IMG/VR virus record: IMGVR_UViG_3300045996_002337
Span: 186,001-250,000 of that record
DNA length: 64,000 nucleotides
Direction: 5' to 3' (one strand)
Position 1 is the first letter of the stretch. Every line of letters begins with the position of its first letter. Shown piece after piece: positions 783 to 55,243 of this stretch. Under the pieces are notes generated by a model. The model had not been told where the DNA came from and made no database searches. It was given only the letters and a program-made list of their open reading frames with translations. Position numbers and translations under genes: made by a program.

Positions 783-812
783 TGCGTTTTCCCTAGATTT
801 TTTCTGTCAACC

Positions 813-818
813 TATTTA
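813..818 (-). promoter_or_regulatory. T4-late-like promoter motif TAAATA (representative; about 20 intergenic copies)
   Basis: Also at 2443, 5124, 5620, 6937, 7994, 8453, 9744, 15045, 15075(+), 20038(+), 26679, 37923, 39539(+), 44250, 45831, 51472, 53594, 54928, 59292, oriented with the downstream gene. Confidence 0.6.
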
Positions 819-854
819 GGACAATGACCTCCAACCGTGACACTTACATTGGTG

Positions 855-2410: not shown

Positions 2411-2454
2411 ATGTTTATTCCTCCATGACCCTAGGTCAGACTTATTTATGGAGC

Positions 2455-2812: not shown

Positions 2813-3934
2813 TCACCTTCTTACGACGGCGCTAATGGCATAGTGCACCTTTTCAGCTGCAGCATCCCATGTAGAGCGCTTCACGATTTCATTTGACAGC
2901 GCTAGTCGGTGCGCCTGCTCAACCTCAGACTCCTTCAGCAGGTGCTCAATGTGCTTGATGAATTCTTCATGGCTGTAGCCAATTTCAACAACACTGCCAT
3001 AAAGTTCAACAACGTCATGCACCGCGGTTGACACGATGGGCTTCTCTGCGGCCATGTACTCAAGGGTCTTCGTTGGTGAAATGAACTTCGTGCTGTCATT
3101 AAGGGCGAAAGGCAGCATGCAGACGTCCCACCCTTGAACGATCATTGGTAGAATGGCGTAATCTTTTTGGCCCAGCCAATGAATGTTTTCACGTTGCGGC
3201 AGAATTGCAGGATCGATCTTAACAACCGGACCAACCATTACAACATGCCAACGTGGATTGGCATCGGCAATTTTTGCCACAAGCTCAACATCAAGTCGTT
3301 CGTCGATAACGCCGAAGAAGCCAATCCGTGGGTGTGGAATTTTTGTTTCTTCTTCAAACAGTGTCTCAGCTTCAATTTCACGAGCTCGAGATGGTGAATA
3401 GTGCTTAGAATCAACGCATGATGGAAGACAAATGGTGTCTGGACGAATTTTTGATTTTGCTGCCCACAATGATGGACCGCCGGCGATGACCACATCCGCG
3501 GTTTGAAGTAGATCGGCCTCACGTTCCTTTAGCTCCTTGGGCGCGTTGTGGAACATCGTCAGTTCGTCCATTACGTCGAACACGACAAAATCTGGCGAGA
3601 ATAGATTATGAAGCGGGTAGGCCTGTGGGGTGTAGAACCAAATACCATAGGAGTCATCACCGCAGCCATTTGAAAAGAACCATTCGCGCAGCAATGGGCC
3701 AAATGAAATCATGTGCTGATTGGTGAAACCCCACCCTTCCTCATTTGTGTGTGGCACTACAACGGTGATGTTAGCTGCCACCTTTGCAGTGTAGAGGTGA
3801 GGTGCGCCAGTCGTAAACATCGGCTCCTCAACGAAGACGATGTTATAGTGCTCAGCCAGCCTCGATAGAAGGTGCTGTGGACGTTGAAAAACGAAGTTCC
3901 AGCGTAGGTGGGAGAATACTAGGAGGGTTTTCAT
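2813..3934 (-). CDS. GT-B glycosyltransferase (family 4-like)
   Basis: FSHLRWNFVFQRPQHLLSRLA N-terminus, IGFFGVIDERLD, PTKTLEYMAAEKPIVST. Confidence 0.9.
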   Translation of the reverse strand: MKTLLVFSHLRWNFVFQRPQHLLSRLAEHYNIVFVEEPMFTTGAPHLYTAKVAANITVVVPHTNEEGWGFTNQHMISFGPLLREWFFSNGCGDDSYGIWFYTPQAYPLHNLFSPDFVVFDVMDELTMFHNAPKELKEREADLLQTADVVIAGGPSLWAAKSKIRPDTICLPSCVDSKHYSPSRAREIEAETLFEEETKIPHPRIGFFGVIDERLDVELVAKIADANPRWHVVMVGPVVKIDPAILPQRENIHWLGQKDYAILPMIVQGWDVCMLPFALNDSTKFISPTKTLEYMAAEKPIVSTAVHDVVELYGSVVEIGYSHEEFIKHIEHLLKESEVEQAHRLALSNEIVKRSTWDAAAEKVHYAISAVVRR

Positions 3935-9138: not shown

Positions 9139-9213
9139 TGGCGCCCCTGGCAGGAATCGAACCCACATTCACGCTTTAGAAGAGCGGTGTATTTTCCATT
9201 ATACGACAGGGGC
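9139..9213 (-). tRNA. tRNA-Arg(TCT)
   Basis: Cloverleaf, loop CT-TCT-AA, encoded CCA. Confidence 0.9.
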
Positions 9214-9219
9214 AGAGGT

Positions 9220-9738
9220 TTATTTTAACTCGTTTTTCTTCTCTATCTCAACTATTTGTTCAAGAACTGCGGTTGGGTTTGTTTCATCTGAAAGTCCCTG
9301 TGCTTCCGTGCGGTGTTCTTGTCTAACATCTAACCGCTCAGCTATCTTGTCAAGCAGCCGGAGGATAGCTGTGCTCTCGCGTTCAGCCAGCAGGTTAATT
9401 TGCAGGTCGAGTTTGTGTCGCTTGTCTGCTTCTTCAGCTAGACGATTCTGACTCAACAAAAGGAAACCAGAAAGGAGAATGGCCTCGAGCGAGACGAGTG
9501 TCGTGAGCAGGGTAAATGGGAACGGATCAAACTGCCATACAGTCAAATTAAGGGTTGTCCAGCCAATGAAGATGGCTAGATGAACGGCGATGAAGCTGAC
9601 GGTGCCAGCCCATTGTGCCACAGTATGTGCCACTTTTTCCGGGATGGATTGTTTCTTGAGCTGATCTTGCTCGTGCACAAAGATCGCCTCGATGTTCTCG
9701 TGGGTGATCTGCACTGGGTCATTAGGTGCTTCATTCAT
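9220..9738 (-). CDS. DUF1003 family membrane protein
   Basis: FDPFPFTLLTTLVSLEAILLSGFLLLSQNR...DLQINLLAE-x-E motif. Confidence 0.9.
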   Translation of the reverse strand: MNEAPNDPVQITHENIEAIFVHEQDQLKKQSIPEKVAHTVAQWAGTVSFIAVHLAIFIGWTTLNLTVWQFDPFPFTLLTTLVSLEAILLSGFLLLSQNRLAEEADKRHKLDLQINLLAERESTAILRLLDKIAERLDVRQEHRTEAQGLSDETNPTAVLEQIVEIEKKNELK

Positions 9739-9752
9739 GCACCTATTTATGT

Positions 9753-9879
9753 TGGTGGTGGCGGAAGGAATCGAACCTCCCCTGGCCGTTTATGAGTCGG
9801 ATAACCAATTACGGACGGTTGAGCTAACAACGAAAGGTGCAATCGATGTTTACCGTGCTGTCCACTACACTACGCCACC
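9753..9879 (-). ncRNA. tRNA/Y-RNA hybrid: tRNA acceptor, D and T arms with CCA, and a ~50-nt Ro60-helix-like domain in place of the anticodon arm
   Basis: GGTGGCG/CGCCACC-A-CCA, D arm, T loop TTCGATT; insert contains TCG-TTG[TTAGCT]CAA-C-CG and GGTTATCC/GATTGC, shared with the Y-like family. Confidence 0.6.
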
Positions 9880-9884
9880 ATGTT

Positions 9885-9956
9885 TGGAACCGCGGATGGG
9901 ATTCGAACCCACACATCAATCCTTCGGAGGGATCGTGCCGTTCCACCGGCCGCGGT
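9885..9956 (-). tRNA. tRNA-Arg(CCG)
   Basis: Cloverleaf with weak D arm, CT-CCG-AA, CCA. Confidence 0.8.
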
Positions 9957-9957
9957 A

Positions 9958-10033
9958 TGGTGCTCTCGTCCAGGCTCGAACTGGATCCTCCGGATTACGA
10001 AACCGGCATACCACCATGTAATACTTCGAGAGC
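9958..10033 (-). tRNA. tRNA-Thr(CGT)
   Basis: TT-CGT-AA loop, CCA. Confidence 0.8.
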
Positions 10034-10099
10034 ATAGCCTAGATTCGATGTGAGCAGTTTCTACTCAAGTCATCAGTCTCTAGGCGGGACTTTAATTGA

Positions 10100-10181
10100 T
10101 CTGAACAAAGCCTTGCGGCGGCGCGGTCGAGGGCGAGTTCAAGTAAAAGTTGATAACCCTGCGGGTGCGATCCGGTTCAGA
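10100..10181 (-). ncRNA. Y-RNA-like small RNA (no tRNA module)
   Basis: TCTGAA-C-CG...GGTTATC...pyrimidine-rich loop...GCC-GCAA-GGC-TTTG-TTCAGA; homologous to 13170..13248. Confidence 0.6.
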
Positions 10182-10193
10182 AATTTTGTGTGT

Positions 10194-10418
10194 TCAAACA
10201 GCTTCGAGACCCTTTGCGTTGACCTCGAGCTGTTTTCGGATGTACCGCATGAAGAGCATGGCCTTGTCTTCCGCAAGGAAGACACCATCACCACAGTCTT
10301 CGACAGGCACGACGAAGTCAAAGCCGTCGTCAGTCCGGTAGTGAAGCTCGTTCTTGCGATACATCATGAAGCGGACCCGTTTTCCAGGTCCGACAAGTTC
10401 TTTCAGAGTGCTCATCAC
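10194..10418 (-). CDS. hypothetical protein
   Basis: 74-aa ORF coupled to 10415..10771. Confidence 0.65.
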   Translation of the reverse strand: MMSTLKELVGPGKRVRFMMYRKNELHYRTDDGFDFVVPVEDCGDGVFLAEDKAMLFMRYIRKQLEVNAKGLEAV

Positions 10419-10771
10419 ACCGTGTCTCCAATAAGATGGGGCGCGAGGTCTGGTCGATCAGGGTACTTCGCATCGATGGCATCGATCGCAAGGTGGGGCG
10501 ACGTGCCTCGATCCAGTTCGTGGATCTTGGAGAAGCCATTTTCCTTCGTGATTAGTGACTCGTGAGGCGAGATGCCGCCACGATACTTGCCATCACCCTT
10601 CTTGTGCATGAGGTTGCCAGTTGCTGGGTCGATCGAGCCCCACTTTGGCGTGTGCTCGGTCTCGATCGGCTCGACGTAGTACGTCTTGCCGGTGCGATAG
10701 GAGTAGACGATGAACCTGCCCGTGTCGTCGGTGCGACGCAGAAACGCGGAATGTACTTCACGGCTGATCAT
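10415..10771 (-). CDS. hypothetical protein
   Basis: 118-aa ORF with good SD. Confidence 0.7.
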   Translation of the reverse strand: MISREVHSAFLRRTDDTGRFIVYSYRTGKTYYVEPIETEHTPKWGSIDPATGNLMHKKGDGKYRGGISPHESLITKENGFSKIHELDRGTSPHLAIDAIDAKYPDRPDLAPHLIGDTV

Positions 10772-10810
10772 CTTCTTTCTCCTTAAGGGTTATGAGCACT
10801 ATTGCTCGGG

Positions 10811-11146
10811 TTAATTTTTCTCGAATTTGGCTTTGAGCCGCTGATACTGAGCAAGTTCGGCTTCTTTCTTTTCCTTGCGTTGTTGCTTCTTGCGCTCCTT
10901 TGCAAGGAGCTCGATGCGTTCCATCAGTTCAGTATGAGCAGCCTCGGACGCAATGCGATCAGCTTCTTGCGCATCGGTTTCAAGCCGTTGATAGACCAAA
11001 TAGATTTCGTTATCGTAGTAGCCGTGCCCCCTCTGGATGACAGCCGACTCAATTTCTTCTGGAGACAAGTTCGCGAGCAAGTCGCTCAAGCGATGCTGAT
11101 TAGTGATTTCAAAGAGTTGAAAGGTTTCGGTAATCTTTTGCTTCAT
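10811..11146 (-). CDS. hypothetical protein (coiled-coil C-terminus)
   Basis: 111-aa ORF, SD GAGG. Confidence 0.65.
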   Translation of the reverse strand: MKQKITETFQLFEITNQHRLSDLLANLSPEEIESAVIQRGHGYYDNEIYLVYQRLETDAQEADRIASEAAHTELMERIELLAKERKKQQRKEKKEAELAQYQRLKAKFEKN

Positions 11147-11164
11147 AAAAACCTCTGTTTATTG

Positions 11165-11238
11165 TGGTGCTCAATGAAGGAATTGAACCTTCTCTTCATC
11201 CTTACCAAAGATGCGTACTGCCATTATACGAAGAGAGC
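11165..11238 (-). tRNA. tRNA-Thr(GGT)
   Basis: TT-GGT-AA; two acceptor mismatches; CCA. Confidence 0.8.
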
Positions 11239-11244
11239 ATGGAT

Positions 11245-11319
11245 TGGTGGTGATGGTGGGAATCGGACCCACGACACAGAGCTTATGAGACTCCTGCTTA
11301 ACCATTCAGCTTCATCACC
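11245..11319 (-). tRNA. tRNA-Met/Ile2(CAT)
   Basis: CT-CAT-AA; CCA. Confidence 0.8.
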
Positions 11320-11324
11320 ATGTT

Positions 11325-11397
11325 TGGCAAGCCTCCATGGATTTTAACCACGACCTCCGTTCGCGACACGGCGCACTGACAATTGTGCTAAAGACTT
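11325..11397 (-). tRNA. degenerate tRNA, anticodon CGC (Ala?)
   Basis: Cloverleaf with GT-CGC-GA loop, atypical T loop TTAAAAT, lacks the usual Ala acceptor sequence; CCA. Confidence 0.5.
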
Positions 11398-11403
11398 ATT
11401 GTT

Positions 11404-11479
11404 TGGCAACCCCGGTCAGACTCGAACTGACGCCCTTCGCGCTCAGAACGCGACGCTCTACCAACTAAGCTACGAGGCA
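11404..11479 (-). tRNA. tRNA-Gln(CTG)
   Basis: TT-CTG-AG, weak 1:72 pair, G73, CCA. Confidence 0.85.
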
Positions 11480-11488
11480 ACTGATTTT

Positions 11489-11562
11489 TGGCGATCCGTA
11501 GGGGAATCGAACCCCTTTCTTACGCTAGACAGGCGTAGATAATACCAATATATGAACGGACC
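11489..11562 (-). tRNA. tRNA-Asp(GTC)
   Basis: CT-GTC-TA, G73, CCA. Confidence 0.85.
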
Positions 11563-11567
11563 ATGTT

Positions 11568-11642
11568 TGGTGCCTGAGAAAGGAATCGAACCTTAGGTCT
11601 ACCGCTTATCAAGCGGGTGCTCTACCATTGAGCTACTCAGGC
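11568..11642 (-). tRNA. tRNA-Ile(GAT)
   Basis: TT-GAT-AA, CCA. Confidence 0.9.
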
Positions 11643-12012
11643 GTTTTTTGTTTCCTTTGCCACCTTTGGATGAGGCGGCACGGTGCATTTCCTTCCATCG
11701 CTCTTCACCGTATTTCGCGACGTTTTTCGCATATTGCGACGACCATGTTCCCGCTGCTTTTTGATCAAACAGATTGTCACTGGGCGTTCCCCAATACAGA
11801 TGTTTAGGGTTTGAACACGCGTGAACATTACACGCGTGGCACAGAAGGATCTTCATGCCTGCAGGAATTGTCGTTTTAAGCGTGTGAGCTAAAAGACCTC
11901 GATAATGACGGCTGTCCGCTCCTCCAATGAGAATACAGGGCTCAGTCAAATCTAAATGCGCAATACGTTCTGCCCGAGAGCGCTGTATATAGGCTTCAAT
12001 GTCTTCAAACAT
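11599..12012 (-). mobile_element. free-standing HNH (His-Me finger) homing-endonuclease-like gene inside the tRNA array
   Basis: LLCHACNVHACSNPKHLYWGTPSDN motif; own TATAAT promoter near 12019; stop codon lies inside tRNA-Ile. Confidence 0.7.
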
Positions 12013-12032
12013 GATGCATTATAACACAAATT

Positions 12033-12107
12033 TGGTACTCCTGACGGGTTTCGATCCCGCTTCTCAACCTTGAAAGGGTCGTGTCCTAGCCACTAGACGA
12101 CAGGAGT
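12033..12107 (-). tRNA. tRNA-Glu(TTC)
   Basis: CT-TTC-AA, CCA. Confidence 0.85.
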
Positions 12108-12109
12108 AT

Positions 12110-12183
12110 TGGTACCTGCAGAAGGAATCGAACCTTCTTCTCAACGATGTCAACGTCGCGCTCTACCATTGAGCTATGCGGGT
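12110..12183 (-). tRNA. tRNA-Val(GAC)
   Basis: TT-GAC-AT, CCA. Confidence 0.9.
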
Positions 12184-12189
12184 GATGTT

Positions 12190-12264
12190 TGGCGCCGACG
12201 ACGGGACTCGAACCCGCCTAAACCTCATAGACAGTGAGGTGTTCTCCCTGAGAACTACGTCGGC
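12190..12264 (-). tRNA. tRNA-Asp(GTC)
   Basis: CT-GTC-TA, G73, CCA. Confidence 0.85.
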
Positions 12265-12270
12265 AATGTT

Positions 12271-12346
12271 TGGCAAGGGAGGTGGGACTCGAACCCACAA
12301 CAGGCGCATTCAAAGTGCGGTGCTCTACCAATTGAGCTACTCCCCA
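12271..12346 (-). tRNA. tRNA-Gln(TTG)
   Basis: CT-TTG-AA, CCA. Confidence 0.9.
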
Positions 12347-12366
12347 ACAGAAATTTATGTCTTAAG

Positions 12367-12448
12367 CTCCACGATCTGGGCTCGAACCAGACTTGATCTT
12401 TCGATCGCGGATTAACAGTCCGCTGCCACACCCGGCGGCTCTCGTGGA
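12367..12448 (-). tRNA. tRNA-Asn(GTT)-like with long variable arm, no encoded CCA, flanks extend the acceptor stem
   Basis: GCGGA-CTGTTAA-TCCGC; GATC-GAAA-GATC variable arm; CTTAAGCTCCACGA/TCGTGGAGCTTAAG 14-bp stem. Confidence 0.65.
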
Positions 12449-12476
12449 GCTTAAGACACTTACATAATGTTCTTTG

Positions 12477-12548
12477 CTCCAGAGGCAGGGATCGAACCTA
12501 CGACGGACGCATTAACAGTGCGCTGCTCTACCGCTGAGCTACACTGGA
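12477..12548 (-). tRNA. tRNA-Asn(GTT), no encoded CCA
   Basis: Canonical cloverleaf; leader TGTTCTTTGC pairs with trailer GCAAAGAACA. Confidence 0.85.
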
Positions 12549-12577
12549 GCAAAGAACACGTTTCAAAAATACTTAGG

Positions 12578-12651
12578 AGTGACCAGAGGGACTTGAACCC
12601 TCATTATCTGCATTCACAGTGCAGCGCGTCTACCAATTCCGCCATGGCCAC
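12578..12651 (-). tRNA. tRNA-His(GTG), no encoded CCA
   Basis: CT-GTG-AA; leader ACTTAGG pairs with trailer CCTAAGT; C at -1 and T73 are atypical. Confidence 0.75.
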
Positions 12652-12668
12652 GCCTAAGTATTCTTACT

Positions 12669-12744
12669 TGGTACGTCTGAGAGGATTCGAACCTCCAACC
12701 TGAGCCTTCGTAGGACCCTGCTCTTCCAGTTGAGCTACAGACGT
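12669..12744 (-). tRNA. tRNA-Arg(ACG)
   Basis: CT-ACG-AA, CCA. Confidence 0.9.
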
Positions 12745-12750
12745 ATTGTT

Positions 12751-12826
12751 TGGTAGGGGCACAGGGATTCGAACCCTGACTTGACGGATTAAAAGTCCGC
12801 TGTGATAACCATTTCACCATACCCCC
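12751..12826 (-). tRNA. tRNA-Lys(TTT)
   Basis: CT-TTT-AA, CCA. Confidence 0.85.
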
Positions 12827-12841
12827 GTTAGGAGGTACGTT

Positions 12842-12887
12842 TGGCAGACGCGCTAGGCGTCGAAGACATTTGTCGCATTGCGCGTCC
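12842..12887 (-). ncRNA. 46-nt mini-tRNA-like element
   Basis: GGACGCG...CGCGTCT-G-CCA acceptor stem enclosing a small GACA-AA-TGTC hairpin. Confidence 0.4.
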
Positions 12888-12900
12888 TTTCTTTGTTGAT

Positions 12901-12972
12901 TGGCATCCCGTCAGAGAGTCGAACTCTGTCCATGCGTTTTGGAGACGACAGGCCCTAGCCGTAGGCCGAGAT
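12901..12972 (-). tRNA. degenerate tRNA-Trp(CCA)
   Basis: CT-CCA-AA loop, intact T arm and CCA, irregular D arm and anticodon stem. Confidence 0.6.
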
Positions 12973-12984
12973 ATTAACTTGATT

Positions 12985-13078
12985 TGGCTCCCTCGGACGG
13001 ACTCGAACCGCCATATTACGCCTTACGGCCTTTACGTCTGATTAACAGTCAGGTCTCTTACCATTAGAGTACAAGGGA
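12985..13078 (-). tRNA. tRNA-Asn(GTT) with 24-nt variable region
   Basis: CT-GTT-AA; variable arm GCC-GTAA-GGC; G73; CCA. Confidence 0.8.
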
Positions 13079-13086
13079 ATAGAACT

Positions 13087-13161
13087 TGGTGCGCCTCCCC
13101 AGAATCGAACTGGGCTCTCTCCGGTTAAGAGCCGGGACTTCGCCAGCAAAGTTTGAGACGC
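13087..13161 (-). tRNA. tRNA-Lys(CTT)
   Basis: CT-CTT-AA, CCA. Confidence 0.8.
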
Positions 13162-13169
13162 GAAGAAAG

Positions 13170-13248
13170 TCTGAACAAAAGCCTTGCGGCGTGCGGTCTC
13201 AAGGAGGTTCAATAAAAGTGATAACCTTGAAGTTGCGAGCGGTTCAGA
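13170..13248 (-). ncRNA. Y-RNA-like small RNA (no tRNA module)
   Basis: TCTGAA-C-CG...GGTTATC-ACTTTTA...GCC-GCAA-GGC-TTTTG-TTCAGA; homolog of 10100..10181. Confidence 0.6.
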
Positions 13249-13253
13249 TTGTT

Positions 13254-13328
13254 TGGCGCTCCGTAGGGGTTACGATCCCCTCTAGCCAGGTTGAAAGCCT
13301 GGTGACCTCACCAGATGTCTAACGGAGC
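13254..13328 (-). tRNA. tRNA-Glu(TTC)
   Basis: CT-TTC-AA, CCA. Confidence 0.85.
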
Positions 13329-13334
13329 ATTGTT

Positions 13335-13410
13335 TGGTGGGCCCTCACGGAATCGAACCGTGTCCTTCGGAGCTTCAATCCGACGTACGCACCAGCTATA
13401 CCAAAGACCC
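13335..13410 (-). tRNA. tRNA-Phe(GAA)
   Basis: TT-GAA-GC, CCA. Confidence 0.85.
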
Positions 13411-13418
13411 ATAAATTT

Positions 13419-13494
13419 TGGCTGGCCACCGCGGTCTCGAACCGCGAACCCCTGGTTTTGGAGACCAGTGCTCTGCCAATTGAGCTAGTGACCA
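13419..13494 (-). tRNA. tRNA-Trp(CCA)
   Basis: CT-CCA-AA, G73, CCA. Confidence 0.9.
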
Positions 13495-15099: not shown

Positions 15100-15804
15100 G
15101 TGACGATGAGAGACTTTCTTGAACAGAACAACACGCTAGTTGTCGGTTTAGCCGTTGGCGGAACCGTGCTTGCGATCATCCTCGGCATTCTTCTGTATGG
15201 AGCTAGGGAACTTCAAGTCGAAACGCTGAAGAGAATTGATCAACCGGCTGTTGGCGCTGTGGAGCTACCAGGGCCTAAGAATCAAATCAGCGACCGTTCG
15301 AAGAAACAGGTGGATACATTGCTAGATGAAACACCCCACATCGTCGGCGGCTGGGTCACGAAGCTCCAGTATGGAAAGACGGAAAACCCCATCATTCACT
15401 TCTGGACAGAGAGTGACACCGTCAAGGACCTGATCATTGAGTTCGGAGAAATTCAGGAGAGTGGACGCGGATCGAGCTCCGCCGAGCTAAACGCGGCGAG
15501 CGAGCAGTCGCTAAGGAATTCTGAAGAAGCCAAAAGCGGTCTCATTAAGTGTGGGCCGTTGAGCGCCACAAACCTTCTTCAAATTGCACCGTCAATCGTC
15601 AACGTTGCAAAGGGAGTCTGCCGAGCAACTATCCCACCATTTGATGAAAACGTTAACCTAGGCGTGGTGGTGCTGATTGACGTTGATCCAAATGACAACA
15701 ATGCGGACATCCAAGCGATTCGCCGCACGCTGCTTCAACTTCAGATTGACGTGTTCAACCGCGATTACCAAGGTCGTGAGACCTGGGCGCGTGCGATAGA
15801 GTGA
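15100..15804 (+). CDS. holin-T-like membrane protein (paralog 3, divergent)
   Basis: TM segment, KSGLIKC...VCRATIPPFDENVNLGVVVLI...LQIDVF; TAAATA at 15075-15080. Confidence 0.55.
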   Translation: MTMRDFLEQNNTLVVGLAVGGTVLAIILGILLYGARELQVETLKRIDQPAVGAVELPGPKNQISDRSKKQVDTLLDETPHIVGGWVTKLQYGKTENPIIHFWTESDTVKDLIIEFGEIQESGRGSSSAELNAASEQSLRNSEEAKSGLIKCGPLSATNLLQIAPSIVNVAKGVCRATIPPFDENVNLGVVVLIDVDPNDNNADIQAIRRTLLQLQIDVFNRDYQGRETWARAIE

Positions 15805-16188
15805 TTACATTCCAGCGCTGATGGCTTCGCGCTGGGCGTTCTTCAGCTCATGATCTATTGCACGTTCTTCACATTCGCTTTTTAGTTTAACGATGTCACG
15901 ATTTGTGATCGGGCGGCGGAGTGAAGTCTTCCAGCCAGTCAGCGTGTTTTTGACGCACGTGTCTGCTTTCATTTCTGCCACGATCGTTTCTGCTGTTGCA
16001 ACTGTATCAAGATACCTTTGCCAAACAACTGCGCCAATAAGGGGACCTAGAAGGACCGTAGTCAGTGTGATACCGAAAATTGATTCTTTGAACCATGTAT
16101 AGAACTTTACAGGCGCTGCCAGGATAGGCGCGATCAACCATCCAGCACGTGCGGCGCGCCGCGCCCAAAGACGACGAGTTGCGGTCAT
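15805..16188 (-). CDS. hypothetical membrane protein (paralog of 16185..16586)
   Basis: ATRRLWARRA, TM segment, D-x-CVK...ITN-x-D...C. Confidence 0.65.
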   Translation of the reverse strand: MTATRRLWARRAARAGWLIAPILAAPVKFYTWFKESIFGITLTTVLLGPLIGAVVWQRYLDTVATAETIVAEMKADTCVKNTLTGWKTSLRRPITNRDIVKLKSECEERAIDHELKNAQREAISAGM

Positions 16189-16586
16189 TTCAAAATCTCC
16201 ATTTGTTTCTCACGCTCACGTAGACCATCACAAGCTTTGATGGCCCAGTCGACATCCCAGTTAGTAATGGCTTTAAGGGTGGCGCCTTGAACCAACAGCT
16301 TTTTCACACACGGGTCTTTTGCGGCTTTCGCAATACTTTCGTTGGTTGCGGCTCGGGTCTCATGGAAAATGACGAAGTAGAGAAGCGCTGTAATAAGCGG
16401 TGGAAGCCAGATTCCCATCCATGCAATCATGAATTTGCGGATGGCTTCGACAAGAGAGCCAAGACCCCATACGAGTCGATGCGCTCGTCGGGCCCACAGG
16501 CGACGGGTTGCTGTACTTTTCACCGTGAGAATCCTTCTTCTAGAGCCATGACCAGCTTTGGAATGTCGGCGGCATAGAAGCCGCAC
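16185..16586 (-). CDS. hypothetical membrane protein (paralog of 15805..16188)
   Basis: Same ATRRLWARRA and Cys motifs. Confidence 0.6.
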   Translation of the reverse strand: MRLLCRRHSKAGHGSRRRILTVKSTATRRLWARRAHRLVWGLGSLVEAIRKFMIAWMGIWLPPLITALLYFVIFHETRAATNESIAKAAKDPCVKKLLVQGATLKAITNWDVDWAIKACDGLREREKQMEILK

Positions 16587-17317
16587 GAGTTCAACGTATT
16601 GATTTCTACAACCTTCATTCCATCTGGCGTGTCACAGACGTCGATCACAAATGCGGCGTGAGGCTGCCATTCAGCAATTCTATCACGCGCGTAGTCGAAG
16701 AAACACTGGTCAACCTCCGAAGAGTAGATGACCTGGTCGCCGCGCTTGTAGAGCGAAGCCGTGATGATGTCACCGTGTACGACCCAGAAACGGTATTCGG
16801 AGTAGATCACCTTCGGTTTGGTGACTTGAACGAGGGTGTTCTTCGTCAAGGAGTTGCCGTAGTCCTCTTCAAGGACGCAGACCTTTCGCTTCCAGGTGTA
16901 GAATTCTTCCTTCTCGAAAACCTTACCGGCGAATACCTTGCTGTCCTCAATTGGTCGAATGAAGGCGAGATGCTCCTCACCACGTTCAAAGAACGGAAAC
17001 ACCGCGTCCTCGAAACGGCTGACCTTCGAGTCGAAGTTAAGCATATGCTCGCCCCACTTCTCGCGCTGCATTTCAAAGTTGCACGGCTCGAGGTCGAACA
17101 CGCCAGGTGTCCAAATCTTGCGCTTCGCATAGTGCCGGAGGGAGTACGACCCCATGCAGATCACGTTCTTGTGGTCAAGCTCGGGCTCTGGCATGAGGTC
17201 ACCAACGAATGGAACGACCTTGTGAATGGAGTAGGGCAAGCCAAGCCGCTCGAGGGTGTCGAGTAGGGTCTGGTAGGCGGCCTCATTGAAGAGGTTGTTC
17301 TGTAGAATCCAATGCAT
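16520..17317 (-). CDS. ATP-grasp protein, R2K/DUF4343-like
   Basis: FIRP...SKVFAG, SEYRFWVVHG, AFVIDV...VVEINTLNSCGFY. Confidence 0.8.
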   Translation of the reverse strand: MHWILQNNLFNEAAYQTLLDTLERLGLPYSIHKVVPFVGDLMPEPELDHKNVICMGSYSLRHYAKRKIWTPGVFDLEPCNFEMQREKWGEHMLNFDSKVSRFEDAVFPFFERGEEHLAFIRPIEDSKVFAGKVFEKEEFYTWKRKVCVLEEDYGNSLTKNTLVQVTKPKVIYSEYRFWVVHGDIITASLYKRGDQVIYSSEVDQCFFDYARDRIAEWQPHAAFVIDVCDTPDGMKVVEINTLNSCGFYAADIPKLVMALEEGFSR

Positions 17318-17318
17318 G

Positions 17319-17666
17319 TCAGTGCAGCGGCGGGCTGTCGTCGAGGTAGATGTTGTCGTCATCTTCAGCTGTCACTTCTATCAGGTGCAAGATGATCGTC
17401 TGAAGAACTTCAGCATCCAGTTCGTGGATGATTGGGGCCTCTTCTCCGTCACCACCTATTTCGTAGCGCATGAGGTCGCGTGACCCACCCTCAATCGGAT
17501 CCGCGATCACGATGTGCGAAAAGTTCATCAGCTGATAGGAGCTGTCAGGACCAACGGTGAACATGGGCGCGAGGTCCCCAAATTCACCGTCATCGTCGAC
17601 GGTAACTTGTGCGAAGCACTTTTCGCCTTCAACGTCAGGCACACGAAAAATGGCAAGCTTTGACAT
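17319..17666 (-). CDS. hypothetical acidic protein
   Basis: ORF; start MSKLAIF at 17666. Confidence 0.55.
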   Translation of the reverse strand: MSKLAIFRVPDVEGEKCFAQVTVDDDGEFGDLAPMFTVGPDSSYQLMNFSHIVIADPIEGGSRDLMRYEIGGDGEEAPIIHELDAEVLQTIILHLIEVTAEDDDNIYLDDSPPLH

Positions 17667-17950
17667 CACATCACCTCGAAAGCAAAGTTGAGCAGTTCTT
17701 GGGCACCCCATAGATCGAAGGGCACAGGGTCAGGGGTTTCACCGCAGCAGAACTCTTCGAGCTCGGCAGGTGAGAGCTTCGAGAGGGCAATGTCCACCGC
17801 CTTGATGTCAGCTTCAGCATAACGCTCCTCGACGAGATGCATCACGTGGTTAACAACCGATTCCTCGGTCACCCCACGGTAAATGACGCCACTGTCGTAG
17901 GCAATCTCAATGACGGCCTTGATGAGCGATGGGTACTTGTGTGGGATCAT
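17666..17950 (-). CDS. hypothetical protein
   Basis: 94-aa ORF coupled to both neighbours. Confidence 0.6.
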   Translation of the reverse strand: MIPHKYPSLIKAVIEIAYDSGVIYRGVTEESVVNHVMHLVEERYAEADIKAVDIALSKLSPAELEEFCCGETPDPVPFDLWGAQELLNFAFEVM

Positions 17951-19014
17951 TTTGCAAGCTCGTTTGGAATGAAGGCGCGGCCGGCCCGCCAGTGTTTTTG
18001 CGTTTGAACATGATTGGCGCGAACGAACTTTGCCACGCTCTTGCGAAAATCGCCGTAGCTAAACTCACCAGCAATCCGAACCACGTAACCTTCGTCCTTT
18101 TCAAAGTCTAGACTCTTCTCAATGTCACGAACAGTTTTCTCATCCCACATGCCATCATAAAGAACTGGGACAGGTGTTAGGCCGAGCAGCTCACACCAGA
18201 CGATGGTGTCATCCCACCTCAAGCAGCGGTTCTTTGCATCCCAAATGCTAAAGCACATGAAGTATGAAGGCAGGGCGGTGTAGTGAATCGAGTGCTCGGC
18301 CCAGAGGTTCTCGCCGCAAACACGCCAGCCTTCAGGAAGATTGAAGCAGACGTTCTCGATCAGGAACTTCTTGACCCAGGCCCGGTCTTCGCCACCACGG
18401 CTGTCAATCGAACGTGCGTGAATGTGACCATCGCTGTACGCGGTGGTGTTCTCACCGTCCATCTTCTTGGTGATGACTACACGGCGACCTTCAAACTGCG
18501 AGCAGTCCTTCAGGGCTTTGTCGTCGTCTTGTTTTCCAGGAGACCAGGGGAGGTGGAACGTCCGCTCGTACTTGACGTACGAGGTAAACAGATCCAACGC
18601 TCCACCCGCGGCCAGAACTTTCTGTACGGACTCGTCAAAGAAGAGCTCGCCCTTGGCGCGGCGACCGTCAGCAAGTACTGGGTTTCCCCATTTGTCGTAC
18701 TGATGGTCAGGGTAGAAGTGCGGAGGAACCACGATCTTCGTGATGCCTGCTGCTTGACGCACGTCCTCGACCGAGTAGAACGTTTTCTCGCAGAGAAGAT
18801 GATGCAGCTCGCACACGGTCGCGCCGTTCTCGAGATAGTAGCCACCATCTGGCCACAGCCGCCGCTCGAGAATGTGATGCGCGTCGAGCTTGCCCTCAGG
18901 GGTTTGCGCTGCAGTGATTCCGCAGAAAACGCACTTGTGACCATCTCGAAGGAACACACCTTCGCGGAAGTTGTCTCGAGTAAGTAGTTTGGGCTCTGCC
19001 ATGTTATTCTCCAT
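17947..19014 (-). CDS. HNH-domain / RNA ligase fusion protein
   Basis: N-terminal CVFC...DAHHI...NGATVC-x-x-HH; C-terminal ligase motifs KMDGEN, CGEN, EGYVVR, K-F-V-R. Confidence 0.85.
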   Translation of the reverse strand: MENNMAEPKLLTRDNFREGVFLRDGHKCVFCGITAAQTPEGKLDAHHILERRLWPDGGYYLENGATVCELHHLLCEKTFYSVEDVRQAAGITKIVVPPHFYPDHQYDKWGNPVLADGRRAKGELFFDESVQKVLAAGGALDLFTSYVKYERTFHLPWSPGKQDDDKALKDCSQFEGRRVVITKKMDGENTTAYSDGHIHARSIDSRGGEDRAWVKKFLIENVCFNLPEGWRVCGENLWAEHSIHYTALPSYFMCFSIWDAKNRCLRWDDTIVWCELLGLTPVPVLYDGMWDEKTVRDIEKSLDFEKDEGYVVRIAGEFSYGDFRKSVAKFVRANHVQTQKHWRAGRAFIPNELAK

Positions 19015-19609: not shown

Positions 19610-19966
19610 TTAGTCTTCCATGCGCTCAAGCAGTGCATCTTCTTCGCCTTGTCCTGATTCAATGTAGGCGTTCGAACCGTATGCCGGTCGGGCCCATTCC
19701 CAGTTTGCGAAACCGACGGGGAGCTTGCCCTTCTTGAAACGTTCGGTGAGGCGGGCCGCGAACTCTTCGGCGAAGGGCAGAACTTCGTGCTCATAGCCAA
19801 TTGCGAGTCGAAGGCGCAGGCGATTGCCGTTCTCGTCTTCGGCGCAGACGTAAGCTGCAGATCGAATGATTTCACCGCGAGGATTGTCGTAGTCAGCCAT
19901 TTCGGAATTGTGACCTACGACAACCAGGTCCGTGCTACCGAAGAACGTGAGGTTGGATGTTTGCAT
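19610..19966 (-). CDS. hypothetical protein
   Basis: 118-aa ORF directly behind a TATAAT promoter. Confidence 0.65.
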   Translation of the reverse strand: MQTSNLTFFGSTDLVVVGHNSEMADYDNPRGEIIRSAAYVCAEDENGNRLRLRLAIGYEHEVLPFAEEFAARLTERFKKGKLPVGFANWEWARPAYGSNAYIESGQGEEDALLERMED

Positions 19967-20072
19967 GAATGCATTATAACATCCAACCTGATTTATGTAG
20001 AACTGTTACACAAAATGTTCAACCTTGGCCGTATCCATAAATAGAGGTTTGAGGATGATGAGGAGAACGAAC

Positions 20073-20831
20073 ATGGCAAAACTTTTCGCCGTGCTTTTGC
20101 TCACGCTGCTGACTGGTTGTTTTAATCACGTTGATGAGTCAAAGATTCCACTGACTGAGGATGAGCTGGCATACATTGCTGGGCACCCTACGGTCACCTT
20201 CGCGGCCGAGGATAATCGACCTCCATACATTTTTGTGGAGGGCGATCAAGTGAAGGGGCTTTCGACCGAGTACATTGAGCTGATCGCAAAGAAGACGGGT
20301 CTTAAATTCCAGCCTGTTAAAACGGGCAGCTACATCGAAAGCATGGACGCATTAGAAATGGAAAAGGTAGATGTGATGACCTCCATCAGGCCAACTCCGG
20401 AAAATACTCGGTTTATGGGCTTCACCCCGCCAATTGCATATCAGGGCGGTGTTTACGTTTTTCGGGTAAACACTCTTCCTCGTTCTCCGCTTACAACTGG
20501 ACTTCACAAAGGGTGTCCAGCCCGAGGCTACCTCGTGTCTAGATTTCCGGACATGCAGCTCGTTGACACAGTTGATGATGAAGAAGCGATTTCCCTTCTT
20601 CATAAAGGGCTGCTAGACGGAGTGGTCACTGATGCTGGAACAGCACGATACCTAACAAACAAAAGTGACGTTCAAGTGCGGTGGGCTTCCATTAACTTCG
20701 ACTTCCCGTTTTCATTTGCATACAACAGCAATGCTGTCACGCTTGGCAGCATTCTAACAAAAGCTATCTCCTCAATCACCCCCGAGGATAAGCACACCAT
20801 CAATTCACGTTGGTTAGTAGGAACAAAATAA
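20073..20831 (+). CDS. family-3 (amino-acid/PAAT-type) periplasmic substrate-binding lipoprotein
   Basis: LLTGC lipobox; LTEDELAYI...AEDNRPPYIF...G-x-x-x-EYIELIAKKTGLKF; stop overlaps the next ATG (TAATG); TAAATA at 20038-20043. Confidence 0.85.
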   Translation: MAKLFAVLLLTLLTGCFNHVDESKIPLTEDELAYIAGHPTVTFAAEDNRPPYIFVEGDQVKGLSTEYIELIAKKTGLKFQPVKTGSYIESMDALEMEKVDVMTSIRPTPENTRFMGFTPPIAYQGGVYVFRVNTLPRSPLTTGLHKGCPARGYLVSRFPDMQLVDTVDDEEAISLLHKGLLDGVVTDAGTARYLTNKSDVQVRWASINFDFPFSFAYNSNAVTLGSILTKAISSITPEDKHTINSRWLVGTK

Positions 20832-21493
20832 TGGTCATGAAGGTAACTCCCACCACTACCGCCCGTGAAGAGCGCACGTGGAAAACTCTAGCAATTGCCG
20901 CGTGTGGCGTTGCAGCCCTAACTGCGGGGCTCGTCGTGTACAAGGGGTGGGACGTGAAGGAACGAGTTGACAATCTGCCACCTGTTATCTCAAACACAAA
21001 ATTTCAAATTTCTGATCGTTCAAAAGACGCGCTGGTTGAATACATGCGTGAAGAGCCGCTCATTGTCGGCGTTGCAGCTGTTGAAGTTGATCTTGCAAAG
21101 AACACGCGCCGCACTGTTTTCTTTCAGGCAAGCTTGTCAGCTCTTCAGCGGGTGTGGGATGATTATCTAACACGCAGAGCCCCACCACCTGCAGTCTTTT
21201 CAGCTTCTTCACCTGCCCAGCAAAATGAGCGCATGGCGCACGTGATCAATGGCAACTTTGACTGTCGCCCATTTAGAGACACTGTCGGCTTCAAATACTA
21301 TCCAGAGGCAGAGAACTTTGCACCCTGGATCTGCTCAATTTCCGTTCCGCCTGGATTTACCGGCGGGGATTTTAGCGGCTTCATTACGTTTTACTTAACG
21401 CGAGAACCAGAAGACGCTGAAATGAAGAAGATGACAAAGAACGCAATTGAGCTGTCAGCTTTGATTCACCGTCGCGATATCCAGAAGAAATAA
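20831..21493 (+). CDS. holin-T-like membrane protein (paralog 4)
   Basis: TM segment, VINGNFDC...ICSISVPPGFTGGDFSGFITFYL. Confidence 0.6.
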   Translation: MVMKVTPTTTAREERTWKTLAIAACGVAALTAGLVVYKGWDVKERVDNLPPVISNTKFQISDRSKDALVEYMREEPLIVGVAAVEVDLAKNTRRTVFFQASLSALQRVWDDYLTRRAPPPAVFSASSPAQQNERMAHVINGNFDCRPFRDTVGFKYYPEAENFAPWICSISVPPGFTGGDFSGFITFYLTREPEDAEMKKMTKNAIELSALIHRRDIQKK

Positions 21494-21507
21494 GGATTGT
21501 TCACATA

Positions 21508-22149
21508 ATGCAAAACAGACCAGACCGCCTACAGTTTTGGAAACTGATCACCATCGTCTTTACGCTCATTAGCATTGTGGCCTTGGGCATCTTTGGATTT
21601 CAGCAACGTCAACCGATCGCTCTTCAAATTGTCGGGAAGCGAGTCAATTTAGATAGTGGACGAATGCCGGCACCAAGTGACGCGTCTATCAGCGAGCTGC
21701 AGGATTTTACCGAAGCCGGGGGAAACATCATGGGCATCAACGTCATTCGAGTGGATTTTAGAATGAACACCCGCAATACGACGTTCCGTCATTTTAAGGA
21801 ACCTGCAGTAACTGCTGCTTGGGAAAAATTTCTTGAGACGCAGCAGGTGGCACCGCTGTTTGGCTCTAACGAACAGACAAACCAACGTCTGATTAACCTG
21901 ATCAATGGTCAATTTCTGTGCGTTAATACCACGAACACCGTGGCGGCGCAATTGATTCCTGAAGTTGCATCACACAGTCAAACTACGTGTATGGCACCGA
22001 TCCCGCCTGGCTACGGCGACTTCGTCGGCTTCATCAATGTGTTCCTTCGCAAGGCACCCTCAGTGCAGGAGATCACTGAGCTTGAAGAATCAACTAGAAA
22101 ATTGGCGATTGACATCTACGAACGAGACGTCGTAAAAACTAAAAAATGA
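21508..22149 (+). CDS. holin-T-like membrane protein (paralog 5)
   Basis: TM segment, LINGQFLC...TCMAPIPPGYGDFVGFINVFL. Confidence 0.6.
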   Translation: MQNRPDRLQFWKLITIVFTLISIVALGIFGFQQRQPIALQIVGKRVNLDSGRMPAPSDASISELQDFTEAGGNIMGINVIRVDFRMNTRNTTFRHFKEPAVTAAWEKFLETQQVAPLFGSNEQTNQRLINLINGQFLCVNTTNTVAAQLIPEVASHSQTTCMAPIPPGYGDFVGFINVFLRKAPSVQEITELEESTRKLAIDIYERDVVKTKK

Positions 22150-22180
22150 AGAAAGGGTCCGTAAGGACCCTTTCTTTTTT
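22150..22180. terminator. bidirectional intrinsic terminator
   Basis: aagaaagggtcc-gtaa-ggaccctttctttttt between convergent genes. Confidence 0.85.
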
Positions 22181-23082
22181 CAGCGGTACTTGAACAGCTC
22201 GCGTCGGGATCGGGCTGCCGAGTCTTCCTTGAACTCTGCAGTACCAACGAGGCCAAAGCGCTTGAGCAGCTTGCGGCCAGCGATGCGCTTTTTGAAGTAG
22301 TAACGCCCGCTTGGGCATGGGCTTTGTCGGTAGCCGTAGCCAGGAACAGCAGGAGCCGGAACAGCAGCGTCTTGGTAGACGTATTCCTTGTCACCTTGCT
22401 TCTTCTTCTCGTCGGTGGTCAGAGCGTCCCAGGTGGCGCTGTTGATTCGCCGCCAGGGGCGAACGTAACGTACGGTTGGAGGGGTGCGATCTACGATCGC
22501 AAAAACCCACCAGACGCCATCTTGGAAGTAGAGGTGGTGATCCTTATCGACGACACGGAACACAGCATCCTGGCGCGTCTTAAGCTCCTCAGCCTCCTTC
22601 ACCTTGTAGGAAGGGTCGTTGTCCTTCTCAGTCGTGCAGAGAATTTTGGTGGTGGGGTGCACGTAGAAGTTGCGACGCCAGCTCTTTGCAACTGGGGTCC
22701 AGCCATCGTAGGCGTTGAAGGTGCACACGACACCATCGATCAGCTTGGTCTTGGTTTCGACGAAATCGAGCAGCAGGTGCTGGTGAACGTGGTCCTTGAT
22801 CTGACTGCGACGGTCGAAGAGCTCGGAAACTTCGCTGTAGACGACGTCCCAGTTCTTGCCGACTTGCTTTCGGACCCAGCGTTCGAGCGGGTTCAGCAGG
22901 TCGCCAAAGCGCTTGCGGTCCTGCTTCTTTTGGTTGCGGCGCTGAGCCATGATGGACTCTTTGCCGCCGCTGAACTCCTCGTCGAAGATCGAGTTGAGCT
23001 TGCAGCGACGAATTTGTCCGAACTTGTTGCGGCTGCCCCGACGCGGATCCTCGGTGAGGACGCGGTTGAAGTCTTTACGCAT
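22180..23082 (-). CDS. hypothetical basic protein
   Basis: 300-aa ORF with good SD. Confidence 0.75.
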   Translation of the reverse strand: MRKDFNRVLTEDPRRGSRNKFGQIRRCKLNSIFDEEFSGGKESIMAQRRNQKKQDRKRFGDLLNPLERWVRKQVGKNWDVVYSEVSELFDRRSQIKDHVHQHLLLDFVETKTKLIDGVVCTFNAYDGWTPVAKSWRRNFYVHPTTKILCTTEKDNDPSYKVKEAEELKTRQDAVFRVVDKDHHLYFQDGVWWVFAIVDRTPPTVRYVRPWRRINSATWDALTTDEKKKQGDKEYVYQDAAVPAPAVPGYGYRQSPCPSGRYYFKKRIAGRKLLKRFGLVGTAEFKEDSAARSRRELFKYR

Positions 23083-42631: not shown

Positions 42632-42706
42632 TGGTACCGCCGGCGGGAATCGAACCCACGTCTCAGGCTTAGGAGGCCCGCGCACTTTCCACTGTACTAC
42701 GGCGGT
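42632..42706 (-). tRNA. tRNA-Arg(CCT), isolated
   Basis: CT-CCT-AA, CCA. Confidence 0.9.
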
Positions 42707-55166: not shown

Positions 55167-55243
55167 TGGTGCCCAAGGTCGGACTCGAACCGACAGATTG
55201 CAGGTTTTGAATCTGCTGCCTATACCAATTCGGCTACTTGGGC
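55167..55243 (-). tRNA. tRNA-Leu(CAA) with short variable arm
   Basis: TT-CAA-AA, A73, CCA. Confidence 0.75.

Follow-up and report, generated by a model that had tools for sequence, protein, structure and literature searches.

Why would a jumbo phage place a ligand-binding protein of the bacterial sensor-kinase type directly in front of two membrane proteins shaped like the lysis-timing protein of phage T4? The question arises from a three-gene operon in the 64,000-nucleotide stretch (positions 186,001 to 250,000; here called the window) of the 349,660-bp virus record IMGVR_UViG_3300045996_002337. The initial annotation described a plus-strand island of three genes in a minus-strand region, in which a family-3 substrate-binding lipoprotein is translationally coupled to two holin-T-like genes, and proposed that a sensor domain had been recruited next to holin-like membrane proteins independently of a similar locus (locus 1) in the same window. 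The observation itself is confirmed, since every sequence feature named there is present (Table 1), although "holin-T-like" is an interpretation rather than an observation. The interpretation is supported only in part, as described below.

Table 1. Positions in the window of the operon, its neighbours and the related loci.
Feature	Position	Strand	Product	Remarks
Flanking gene	19610-19966	-		
Promoter-like motif	20036-20043	+		CATAAATA, with a T4 late-promoter-like TAAATA core; about 30 nt upstream of the gene 1 start
Gene 1, binding protein	20073-20831	+	252 aa	Stand-alone Venus-flytrap (SBP_bac_3) lipoprotein; an alternative ATG at 20055 gives the 258-aa product called by the source
Gene 2, first-position member of the pair	20831-21493	+	220 aa	One N-terminal membrane helix plus a GAF-like / holin-T-like outer domain; the ATG shares one base with the TAA stop of gene 1 (TAATG)
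Gene 3, second-position member of the pair	21508-22149	+	213 aa	Starts 14 nt after gene 2, with an AAGGA ribosome-binding site; membrane helix at about 7-42, GAF-like domain 58-212, invariant Cys138 and Cys161
Hairpin	22149-22176		12-bp stem, GC-rich	Starts at the last stop codon; shared by the operon and the convergent minus-strand gene
Flanking gene	22180-23082	-		Convergent gene
Locus 1 motif	2443-2450			CATAAATA, preceding the locus 1 binding protein
Locus 1 binding protein	1517-2410	-	297 aa	Secreted TAXI / NMT1_3-type protein
Locus 1 first-position paralogue	855-1643	-	262 aa	Pro/Ala/Glu-rich N-terminal extension; the start, which has an AAGGAG site, lies inside the 3' end of the TAXI gene
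Locus 1 second-position paralogue	96-782	-	228 aa	
Fifth paralogue	15100-15804	+	234 aa	Solitary and divergent; also a plus-strand gene among minus-strand genes

The operon has signals of its own. The CATAAATA motif occurs 5 times in the window against 0.71 expected, and 0 of 100 shuffles reach 5. Genome-wide there are 53 NATAAATA sites, 47 of which have a start codon opening an ORF of at least 50 aa within about 80 nt downstream. The motif precedes tail sheath, tail tube, head-tail adaptor, tail fibre and endolysin genes, so that expression of the operon is probably late. The TAAATA core lies 23-38 nt upstream of the first gene in all 11 related loci checked, and the motif is conserved upstream of all 6 orthologous cassettes. 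The hairpin had been called a bidirectional terminator. A terminator scan scores it only for the minus strand, and only four T follow the stem on the plus strand, so that bidirectional termination is plausible but only half satisfies the rule of the scan.

What kind of binding protein is gene 1? It matches PF00497 at 47.8 bits against a cut-off of 26.4 (E 1.5e-12), and all 27 relatives carry this family. Its N-terminus is a lipoprotein signal with a lipobox, L-T-G-C16, conforming to [LVI][ASTVI][GAS]C, and the Cys is conserved in at least 90% of the 27 relatives. The LTEDELAYI sequence, with which the protein had been said to begin, is residues 27-35; it follows the signal peptide and lipobox and opens the folded domain. 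The best sequence hits among solved structures are BvgS (1.2e-19), EvgS (1.4e-16) and the periplasmic domains of EAL/GGDEF proteins, whereas ABC transport binding proteins reach only about 1e-3. The nearest relatives by sequence and by structure are all sensor inputs, VFT2 of BvgS and EvgS being the closest, and transport proteins rank below them. The claim that the protein is of the sensor-input type is therefore supported. No match to the binding protein or to gene 3 was found by tblastn in GenBank phages, and a motif scan of 185,579 bacterial and archaeal species genomes found no relative of the binding protein. The bacterial scans yielded one pair-bearing contig in a MAG labelled Acinetobacter sp.; its GC is 47%, so it is probably a binned phage contig and only a weak lead to the host.

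Genes 2 and 3, which are 30% identical to each other, belong to an unnamed viral family with about 382 representatives at 50% identity. Gene 2 matches the family profile at 8e-62. A search with gene 3 alone found nothing in viral contigs. In the family the single hydrophobic segment is near residue 20, the median length is 223.5 aa and 86 of 110 members have exactly two Cys, compared with a median of 218 aa and two Cys in 31 of 32 members of the T family. The N-in / C-out orientation is inferred from the conserved Cys pair and a weak positive-inside bias. The structural model is confident (pLDDT 92.9), and the predicted outer domain has a GAF fold and the fold of the solved T domain (6pxe, 6px4, 6psk). 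The nearest ESM Atlas clusters are all viral and 200-240 aa long, and some carry PF11031 (Phage_holin_T) in 12% of members, at feature score 0.97 and TM 0.6. BFVD hits include annotated T / class III holins.

The resemblance to T does not hold for sequence. No Pfam family, including PF11031, hits gene 2 or gene 3; PF11031 is not matched by any of the 110 family members or, at E up to 1, anywhere in the genome, whereas T4 T itself scores 394.7 bits. A comparison by hhalign with T4 T alone showed no homology, and one with 32 true T holins gave a probability of 4.9%, with only the membrane helix aligned. No GAF family (PF01590, PF13185, PF13492) appears among the Pfam hits of the 110 members at E up to 0.1, and a search of the PDB with the family profile found nothing meaningful. 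The cysteines are also at non-equivalent positions. In gene 3 they lie on strands 137-140 and 159-165, which neighbour each other in a standard GAF sheet, while in T they are Cys175 and Cys207, the latter close to the C-terminus.

Is the association of the three genes more than chance? The family nearly always occurs as a tandem pair, on the same strand in 16 of 18 loci. First-position and second-position genes form separate clades, that of the first-position genes with support 100/99, and the position label changes 4 times on the tree against 13 in shuffles, with 0 of 500 as low, which fits an obligate heteromer. The solitary fifth paralogue groups with a solitary copy in a related locus, L015 (100/99). 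The sensor-plus-pair cassette is kept in 6 of 6 orthologous loci down to 44% identity, with gene junctions of -20 to +14 nt, so that the tight coupling is real and conserved. In locus 1 the pair belongs to a different clade and follows an unrelated binding protein, which matches TIGR02122 at 114.6 bits against a cut-off of 84.35 and PF16868 at 1.6e-25, and a TAXI protein lies directly upstream of this other pair lineage in 5 loci. Independent recruitment is thus supported. On the other hand, many relatives (related loci L011, L014, L016, L018, L019, L021, L024 and L025, and phages RaK2 and GAP32) have the pair without any binding protein, which is therefore an accessory and not a core part. 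When the outer domains of genes 2 and 3 were folded with the mature binding protein, the score was 0.00 and no interface was returned, which counts neither for nor against binding.

The analysis establishes the anatomy, namely a late-type operon encoding a lipid-anchored, free-standing flytrap domain of the kind that forms the periplasmic input of BvgS/EvgS sensor kinases and two diverged paralogues of a virus-specific family, each with one N-terminal membrane helix and an extracytoplasmic GAF-like domain braced by a conserved cysteine pair, the same build as the class III holin T. The mechanism, including hole formation, ligand binding and contact between the binding protein and the pair, is inferred from sequence and predicted structure alone. 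Our preferred, still tentative, reading is a ligand-modulated lysis-timing module of the holin/antiholin type. In this view, the two membrane proteins would form a heteromeric complex in the inner membrane, with their outer domains as the regulatory surface, as in T4, where the periplasmic antiholin RI binds the T domain and postpones hole formation. The binding protein would take the RI-like role; on binding or releasing a small periplasmic ligand it would engage the pair and shift the time of membrane permeabilisation, which in turn would set when the endolysin encoded elsewhere is released. Locus 1 would repeat the design with a TAXI-type protein as a second chemical input. The endolysin (phrog_315) shows no hydrophobic N-terminal segment on inspection and has no membrane protein among its immediate neighbours, and it therefore needs a hole-former encoded elsewhere, as in T4. 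However, the loci are not next to the endolysin, five copies per genome is unusual for a holin, late expression is also expected for many non-lysis genes, and a signal-anchored SLT-domain protein and a small 3-helix PQ-loop membrane protein near genome 96-98 kb could be an alternative lysis set. The lysis enzyme families PF00959 and PF00182 were not found in the genome, although the PF00182 control gave no signal anywhere. ICP1 TeaA/ArrA was considered as a model for the tandem pair and rejected, because TeaA is assigned to the unrelated GTA_holin_3TM family (PF11351).

Literature searches for a binding-protein antiholin or a GAF-type holin in jumbo phages found nothing relevant. If the family members are holins, a family of this size with the same build and fold, spread over many jumbo-phage contigs, would widen the T class greatly and would name candidate lysis genes in jumbo phages where none are known. 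Lysis inhibition is the classic case of a phage sensing its surroundings, and the known signal is superinfection; a sensor-kinase-type domain wired to such proteins, recruited twice from unrelated folds, would be a new way for a virus to read the chemistry of the host periplasm. In its boldest form, which we regard as unlikely though not excluded, the reading would have jumbo phages of this lineage time lysis by chemical sensing. Free-standing binding proteins captured from bacterial signalling and transport systems, a BvgS-VFT2-like lipoprotein and a TAXI protein, would act as ligand-dependent antiholin-like regulators of heterodimeric class III holins too diverged to recognise by sequence, one genome would carry at least two independent small-molecule inputs to the lysis clock, and the family, including the RaK2 and GAP32 pairs, would be the missing class IIIa holins of non-T4 phages. 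If lysis is not the function, the conserved module would still be an undescribed phage envelope system.

The strongest of the rivals, itself unlikely, is a periplasmic sensing or envelope-modifying complex unrelated to lysis, in which the outer domains and the binding protein sense a small molecule or bind a host envelope component and then act on host membrane proteins, for example through helix-helix contacts with sensor kinases or transporters, or block superinfection, without forming holes. The GAF fold is a generic small-molecule sensor fold, LuxR-type autoinducer-binding domains are among the hits, the binding protein is a BvgS-VFT2-like sensor module, and five paralogues per genome fit a diversified sensor or effector family better than a holin. 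The RaK2 and GAP32 pairs sit among nucleotide-metabolism genes. On the other hand, the pair proteins have almost no cytoplasmic part (about 10-20 residues in most) and no output domain, so that there is no evident way to pass a signal inward, and the 150 relatives listed are all 130-315 aa long, so that none could carry a kinase or cyclase output domain. The promoter class, that of virion and endolysin genes, is late for host take-over or exclusion.

A nutrient-scavenging role is less likely. Here the lipoprotein would feed a host polar-amino-acid ABC permease or the phage's own transporter, and the membrane proteins would be unrelated passengers or tethers. Phage-borne binding proteins that boost host uptake exist, for example cyanophage PstS, and Arg106 and the acidic motif around Asp182-Asp187 resemble, by inspection only, the amino-acid-binding pattern of family 3. 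The initial annotation held that its view would fail if the protein grouped with ABC transporter proteins and a permease existed elsewhere, and this condition is half fulfilled. The genome encodes an ABC ATPase, a permease and a membrane-anchored TAXI-like binding protein at 269-274 kb, but the permease (BPD_transp_1, with the ATPase at 270-274 kb) is the only one in the phage, is SsuC/SaoP-like, of the sulfonate/taurine type, and sits beside its own ATPase and binding protein. No permease or ATPase is present in this locus or in any of the 6 orthologous loci, and no DctM-type TRAP membrane unit for the TAXI proteins is present in the phage genome. This reading also does not explain why two different classes of binding protein each precede a pair of the same membrane family.

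It is about as unlikely that the binding protein and the pair are independent neighbours that merely share a promoter and a compact arrangement, as is common in phage genomes. The wide occurrence of the pair alone favours this, but the association arose at least twice with unrelated folds (SBP_bac_3 and TAXI), it is kept down to 44% identity with overlapping stop and start codons, and all three products are predicted to be extracytoplasmic. A spanin-like trans-envelope complex, in which an outer-membrane lipoprotein and inner-membrane type II proteins would bridge the periplasm and act at the last step of lysis, can be rejected, since, despite a formally similar topology (a lipoprotein without Asp at position +2 plus N-in / C-out membrane proteins) and a very weak PHROG hit to an Rz-like spanin (E 0.27), that hit covers only residues 2-23, which are the signal peptide and lipobox, o-spanins are small, unstructured and Pro-rich whereas this is a 236-residue folded flytrap domain, and i-spanin periplasmic domains are coiled coils, not GAF-like globules (PMC12894885).

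Among cultured jumbo phages, the tandem pairs RaK2_00146/00145 and GAP32_306/305 belong to the same superfamily and have the same opposite-strand island layout. Their first genes match the family profile at 2.4e-10 and 2.8e-7, and 214-aa proteins from both phages, equated with RaK2_00145 and GAP32_305 by length only, are BFVD fold hits at about 1e-8. They have no binding protein upstream and different cysteine counts, and are annotated only as hypothetical or membrane proteins. The binding protein, for which the RmcA periplasmic domain is also among the closest known systems, shares its opening motif with the BvgS / EvgS input domains, LTEDELAYIAGHP aligning with LTEHEKQWIKQHP of EvgS. It is, however, a separate phage-encoded lipoprotein whose ORF ends directly after the flytrap fold, not fused to a membrane helix, kinase or cyclase. 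Holin T of T4 likewise has one N-in / C-out helix near the N-terminus, a total length of about 215-225 aa and two cysteines in the outer domain, is encoded by a large myovirus-type phage away from the endolysin gene behind a TAAATA-type late motif, and has a separately encoded secreted protein next to it or acting on it in the periplasm. It differs in sequence and in being one gene rather than a conserved heterotypic pair in a genome with five copies, and its partner is the small RI protein, whereas the candidate partner here is a flytrap lipoprotein or a TAXI protein. By analogy, the concept is the same as in LuxP-LuxQ, TorT-TorS, ChvE-VirA and NspS-MbaA, in which a soluble or tethered periplasmic binding protein docks on the periplasmic domain of a membrane protein encoded beside it, although the membrane partners here have no cytoplasmic signalling domain and their outer domain is GAF-like rather than PAS/Cache-like or a helical bundle.

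The 349,660-bp IMG/VR virus record, of which bases 186001-250000 were analysed here, has been estimated by CheckV to be 97% complete, and its GC content is 51%. It has T4-like tail sheath, tail tube and tail fibre genes, and the 64-kb window alone holds 47 tRNA genes, indicating a jumbo myovirus-type phage. The tRNA genes lie in two dense arrays and cover nearly all amino acids, which is a very large set even for a jumbo phage.

Three plus-strand ORFs lie between minus-strand genes. The first two share one base (TAATG), while the third follows after 14 nt and has its own AAGGA site. The promoter motif CATAAATA occurs in 5 copies in the window against 0.71 expected. The genome has 53 NATAAATA sites, and at 47 of them a start codon opening an ORF of at least 50 aa follows within about 80 nt. 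Ten of the downstream genes were scanned against PHROGs, and they include tail sheath, two tail-tube proteins, a head-tail adaptor, tail fibres, a head-decoration-like protein and an endolysin. The TAAATA core is also found 23-38 nt upstream of the first gene in all 11 related cassettes examined. It resembles the late promoter of T4, TATAAATA, and most likely marks late genes. A 12-bp hairpin begins at the last stop codon and is scored as a terminator for the convergent minus-strand gene, whereas on the plus strand only four T follow the stem. The description of this locus in the initial annotation, a plus-strand three-gene island with its own TAAATA motif, a TAATG overlap and a terminator said to be bidirectional, is confirmed, with this reservation about the plus-strand side of the hairpin.

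Positions of the operon, its paralogues and the other loci considered in the text
Feature	Reference	Position	Strand
Promoter motif of the operon	window	20036-20043	
Gene 1, flytrap lipoprotein	window	20073-20831	+
Gene 2, first member of the pair	window	20831-21493	+
Gene 3, second member of the pair	window	21508-22149	+
12-bp hairpin	window	22149-22176	
Locus 1 (TAXI protein and pair)	window	96-2450	-
Paralogue in locus 1	window	96-782	-
First paralogue of locus 1	window	855-1643	-
Start of the first paralogue of locus 1 within the TAXI ORF	window	1517-1643	-
Glycosyltransferase-like ORF upstream of locus 1	window	2813-3934	-
tRNA genes	window	9139-13494, 42632-42706 and 55167-63952	-
Solitary fifth paralogue	window	15100-15804	+
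Two adjacent paralogous small proteins	window	15805-16188 and 16185-16586	-
R2K-clade ATP-grasp protein	window	16520-17362	-
RNA ligase	window	17947-19014	-
SLT-domain protein (genome about 96.3 kb)	L027	1432-2064	-
PQ-motif membrane protein (genome about 97.6 kb)	L027	2792-3079	-
ABC transport cluster (locus L029)	genome	269143-276699	
Endolysin (locus L043)	genome	323572-324165	-
Pair preceded by two paralogous secreted proteins (IMG/VR contig 3300045918_000554)	L018	1923-3421	

Gene 1 encodes a family-3 binding protein (PF00497, 47.8 bits). Its lipoprotein signal ends in L-T-G-C16, and the cysteine is kept in at least 90% of 27 relatives. The nearest solved relatives by sequence are BvgS (1.2e-19), EvgS (1.4e-16), the RmcA periplasmic domain, a histidine-kinase sensor domain and a GGDEF protein, while ABC transport proteins appear only near 1e-3, and NCBIfam ranks EvgS first. 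The opening motif LTEDELAYIAGHP aligns with the start of EvgS VFT2. The protein is a free-standing copy of a sensor-kinase input domain. Its 26 close relatives (44-67% identity) all come from metagenomes, several from contigs of 162-377 kb, and a motif scan of 185,579 species genomes found no bacterial relative.

Genes 2 and 3 are 30% identical to each other and to three more paralogues in the window. A profile search of 1.8 billion representatives found 382 members of this family, and the 150 listed are 130-315 aa long. No Pfam family hits any of 110 members, and PHROGs gives only phrog_31287, of unknown function. Two cysteines and a proline are invariant, and 86 of the 110 members have exactly two cysteines. 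The gene 3 model is confident (pLDDT 92.9), showing a long N-terminal helix at residues 7-42 that includes the membrane segment, followed by an alpha/beta domain with GAF strand order at 58-212. The invariant cysteines lie on strands 137-140 and 159-165, which neighbour each other in a standard GAF sheet; this fits a structural disulfide, from which an extracytoplasmic location is inferred. Directly downstream of the solitary fifth paralogue, on the other strand, lie two adjacent paralogous small proteins (127 and 133 aa), which share an ATRRLWARRA-like N-terminal motif followed by a hydrophobic segment and have no Pfam hit.

The pair is the conserved unit. In 16 of 18 loci from related viral contigs, family members occur as a same-strand tandem pair, and the same is seen in one contig binned with a bacterial MAG. 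The latter (NZ_JAZQPV010000081.1, from a MAG labelled Acinetobacter sp.) is the only hit for the pair family among 185,579 species genomes. It is a 36.6-kb contig with 47% GC that carries a pair without a TAXI gene, and it is probably a phage contig binned with the MAG, hence only a weak host lead. In a maximum-likelihood tree of 39 members, first-position and second-position genes form separate clades within each locus type, with supports of 100/99 and 81/81 for the locus 1 type, and 100/99 and 99/98 for the locus 2 type, to which the present operon belongs. The position label changes 4 times on the tree against 13 in shuffles, and 0 of 500 shuffles are as low. This pattern is what an old, obligate heteromer would leave, for instance a holin with its antiholin or a heterodimeric receptor. 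RaK2 (genes 146 and 145) and GAP32 (genes 306 and 305) have weaker-matching tandem pairs laid out the same way, all of them unannotated.

The binding proteins, on the other hand, are accessories recruited more than once. The flytrap lipoprotein precedes the locus 2 type pair in all six orthologous loci examined, with junctions of -20 to +14 nt. In locus 1, an unrelated secreted TAXI / NMT1_3 protein plays the same positional role. A TAXI gene is directly upstream of that pair lineage in five loci, lies about 4 kb away in three more, and is absent from eight. The first paralogue of locus 1 starts at an ATG with a perfect AAGGAG site that lies 127 nt inside the 3' end of the TAXI ORF, and TAXI homology ends about 21 codons before its stop. 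Two relatives, L011 and L014, lack the TAXI gene and have longer first-position ORFs (about 302-315 aa), suggesting that the TAXI gene was inserted or lost at this junction. In another relative, L018, the pair is preceded not by a binding protein but by two paralogous secreted proteins (227 and 241 aa) that share an AECTLYE motif, which may be a third kind of periplasmic partner. Two binding-protein folds, in front of two clades of the same membrane family and behind the same promoter motif, argue for a functional link. They also support the proposal of the initial annotation that the sensor domain was recruited independently of locus 1.

A 373-aa ORF upstream of locus 1, whose sequence looks like a glycosyltransferase by eye alone, has similar ORFs at the same place in the related loci L013 and L014. 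Just upstream of the present operon lie an R2K-clade ATP-grasp protein (PF14243, 8e-18) and an RNA ligase (PF09414, 7e-27), the latter with an HNH-like Cys/His motif at its N-terminus seen by eye only. An RNA-ligase gene lies upstream of the cassette in the related loci L005, L008/L009 and L048.

The genome has an endolysin (phrog_315, 1.7e-46) that shows no hydrophobic N-terminal segment on inspection. It is preceded by the same late motif CATAAATA and is embedded among nrd-like (ribonucleotide-reductase-like) genes with no membrane protein beside it, much as T4 gene e stands alone. As in T4, a hole-former must be encoded elsewhere. No PF11031 gene was found in the genome. Other lysis candidates cannot be excluded. 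A 210-aa SLT-domain protein with an N-terminal signal anchor, which could be a SAR-type lysin or a virion transglycosylase, lies close to a 95-aa three-helix membrane protein with a PQ motif, resembling a SemiSWEET or PQ-loop protein.

Collectively, the analysis establishes a conserved, probably late, three-gene envelope operon that encodes a sensor-type flytrap lipoprotein and a heterotypic pair of proteins with a single membrane helix and a GAF-like, T-like outer domain, as well as a parallel design with a TAXI protein in the same genome. That the three proteins interact, that the pair forms or controls membrane holes and that ligand binding shifts lysis timing are inferences, the single complex prediction having returned no verdict. 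The interpretation in the initial annotation, a sensor domain recruited next to holin-like membrane proteins, is therefore only partly supported. The lysis-timing reading is preferred, but tentatively. A non-lytic periplasmic sensing role is possible although unlikely.

Nutrient uptake is less likely still. The phage does encode an ABC ATPase, an SsuC/SaoP-like permease and a membrane-anchored TAXI-like binding protein (356 aa) at genome 269-274 kb, in a cluster that also holds an HflK-like band-7 protein and a 565-aa membrane protein with an OmpA-like peptidoglycan-binding end, with a NadR-like NMN adenylyltransferase/Nudix gene nearby. The presence of a permease elsewhere in the genome, which had been named beforehand as one part of a condition against the sensor reading, is therefore formally fulfilled. 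However, that permease class normally serves NMT1-type proteins and has its own binding protein next to it, whereas the flytrap protein groups with sensors, not transporters. A TAXI-type protein beside an ABC system rather than a TRAP system is unusual, and no TRAP membrane unit is present in the genome. Mere adjacency of the binding protein and the pair is the least likely of these readings, in view of the two unrelated folds found in the same position.

The resemblance of the pair to holin T of phage T4 lies in build and predicted fold rather than in sequence. Profile-profile comparison with 32 genuine T holins finds nothing beyond the membrane helix, at a probability of 4.9%, and the cysteines are not at equivalent positions. 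On the other hand, the nearest ESM Atlas clusters by shape and by language-model features are viral proteins of 200-240 aa, and some of these clusters have PF11031 hits in 12% of members. BFVD returns uncharacterised proteins of the jumbo phages GAP32, RaK2 and pT24 first, with annotated T or class III holins a little lower. Length, helix position and cysteine count mirror the T family. These proteins are therefore described here as having the build and predicted fold of a class IIIa holin, without being filed in PF11031.
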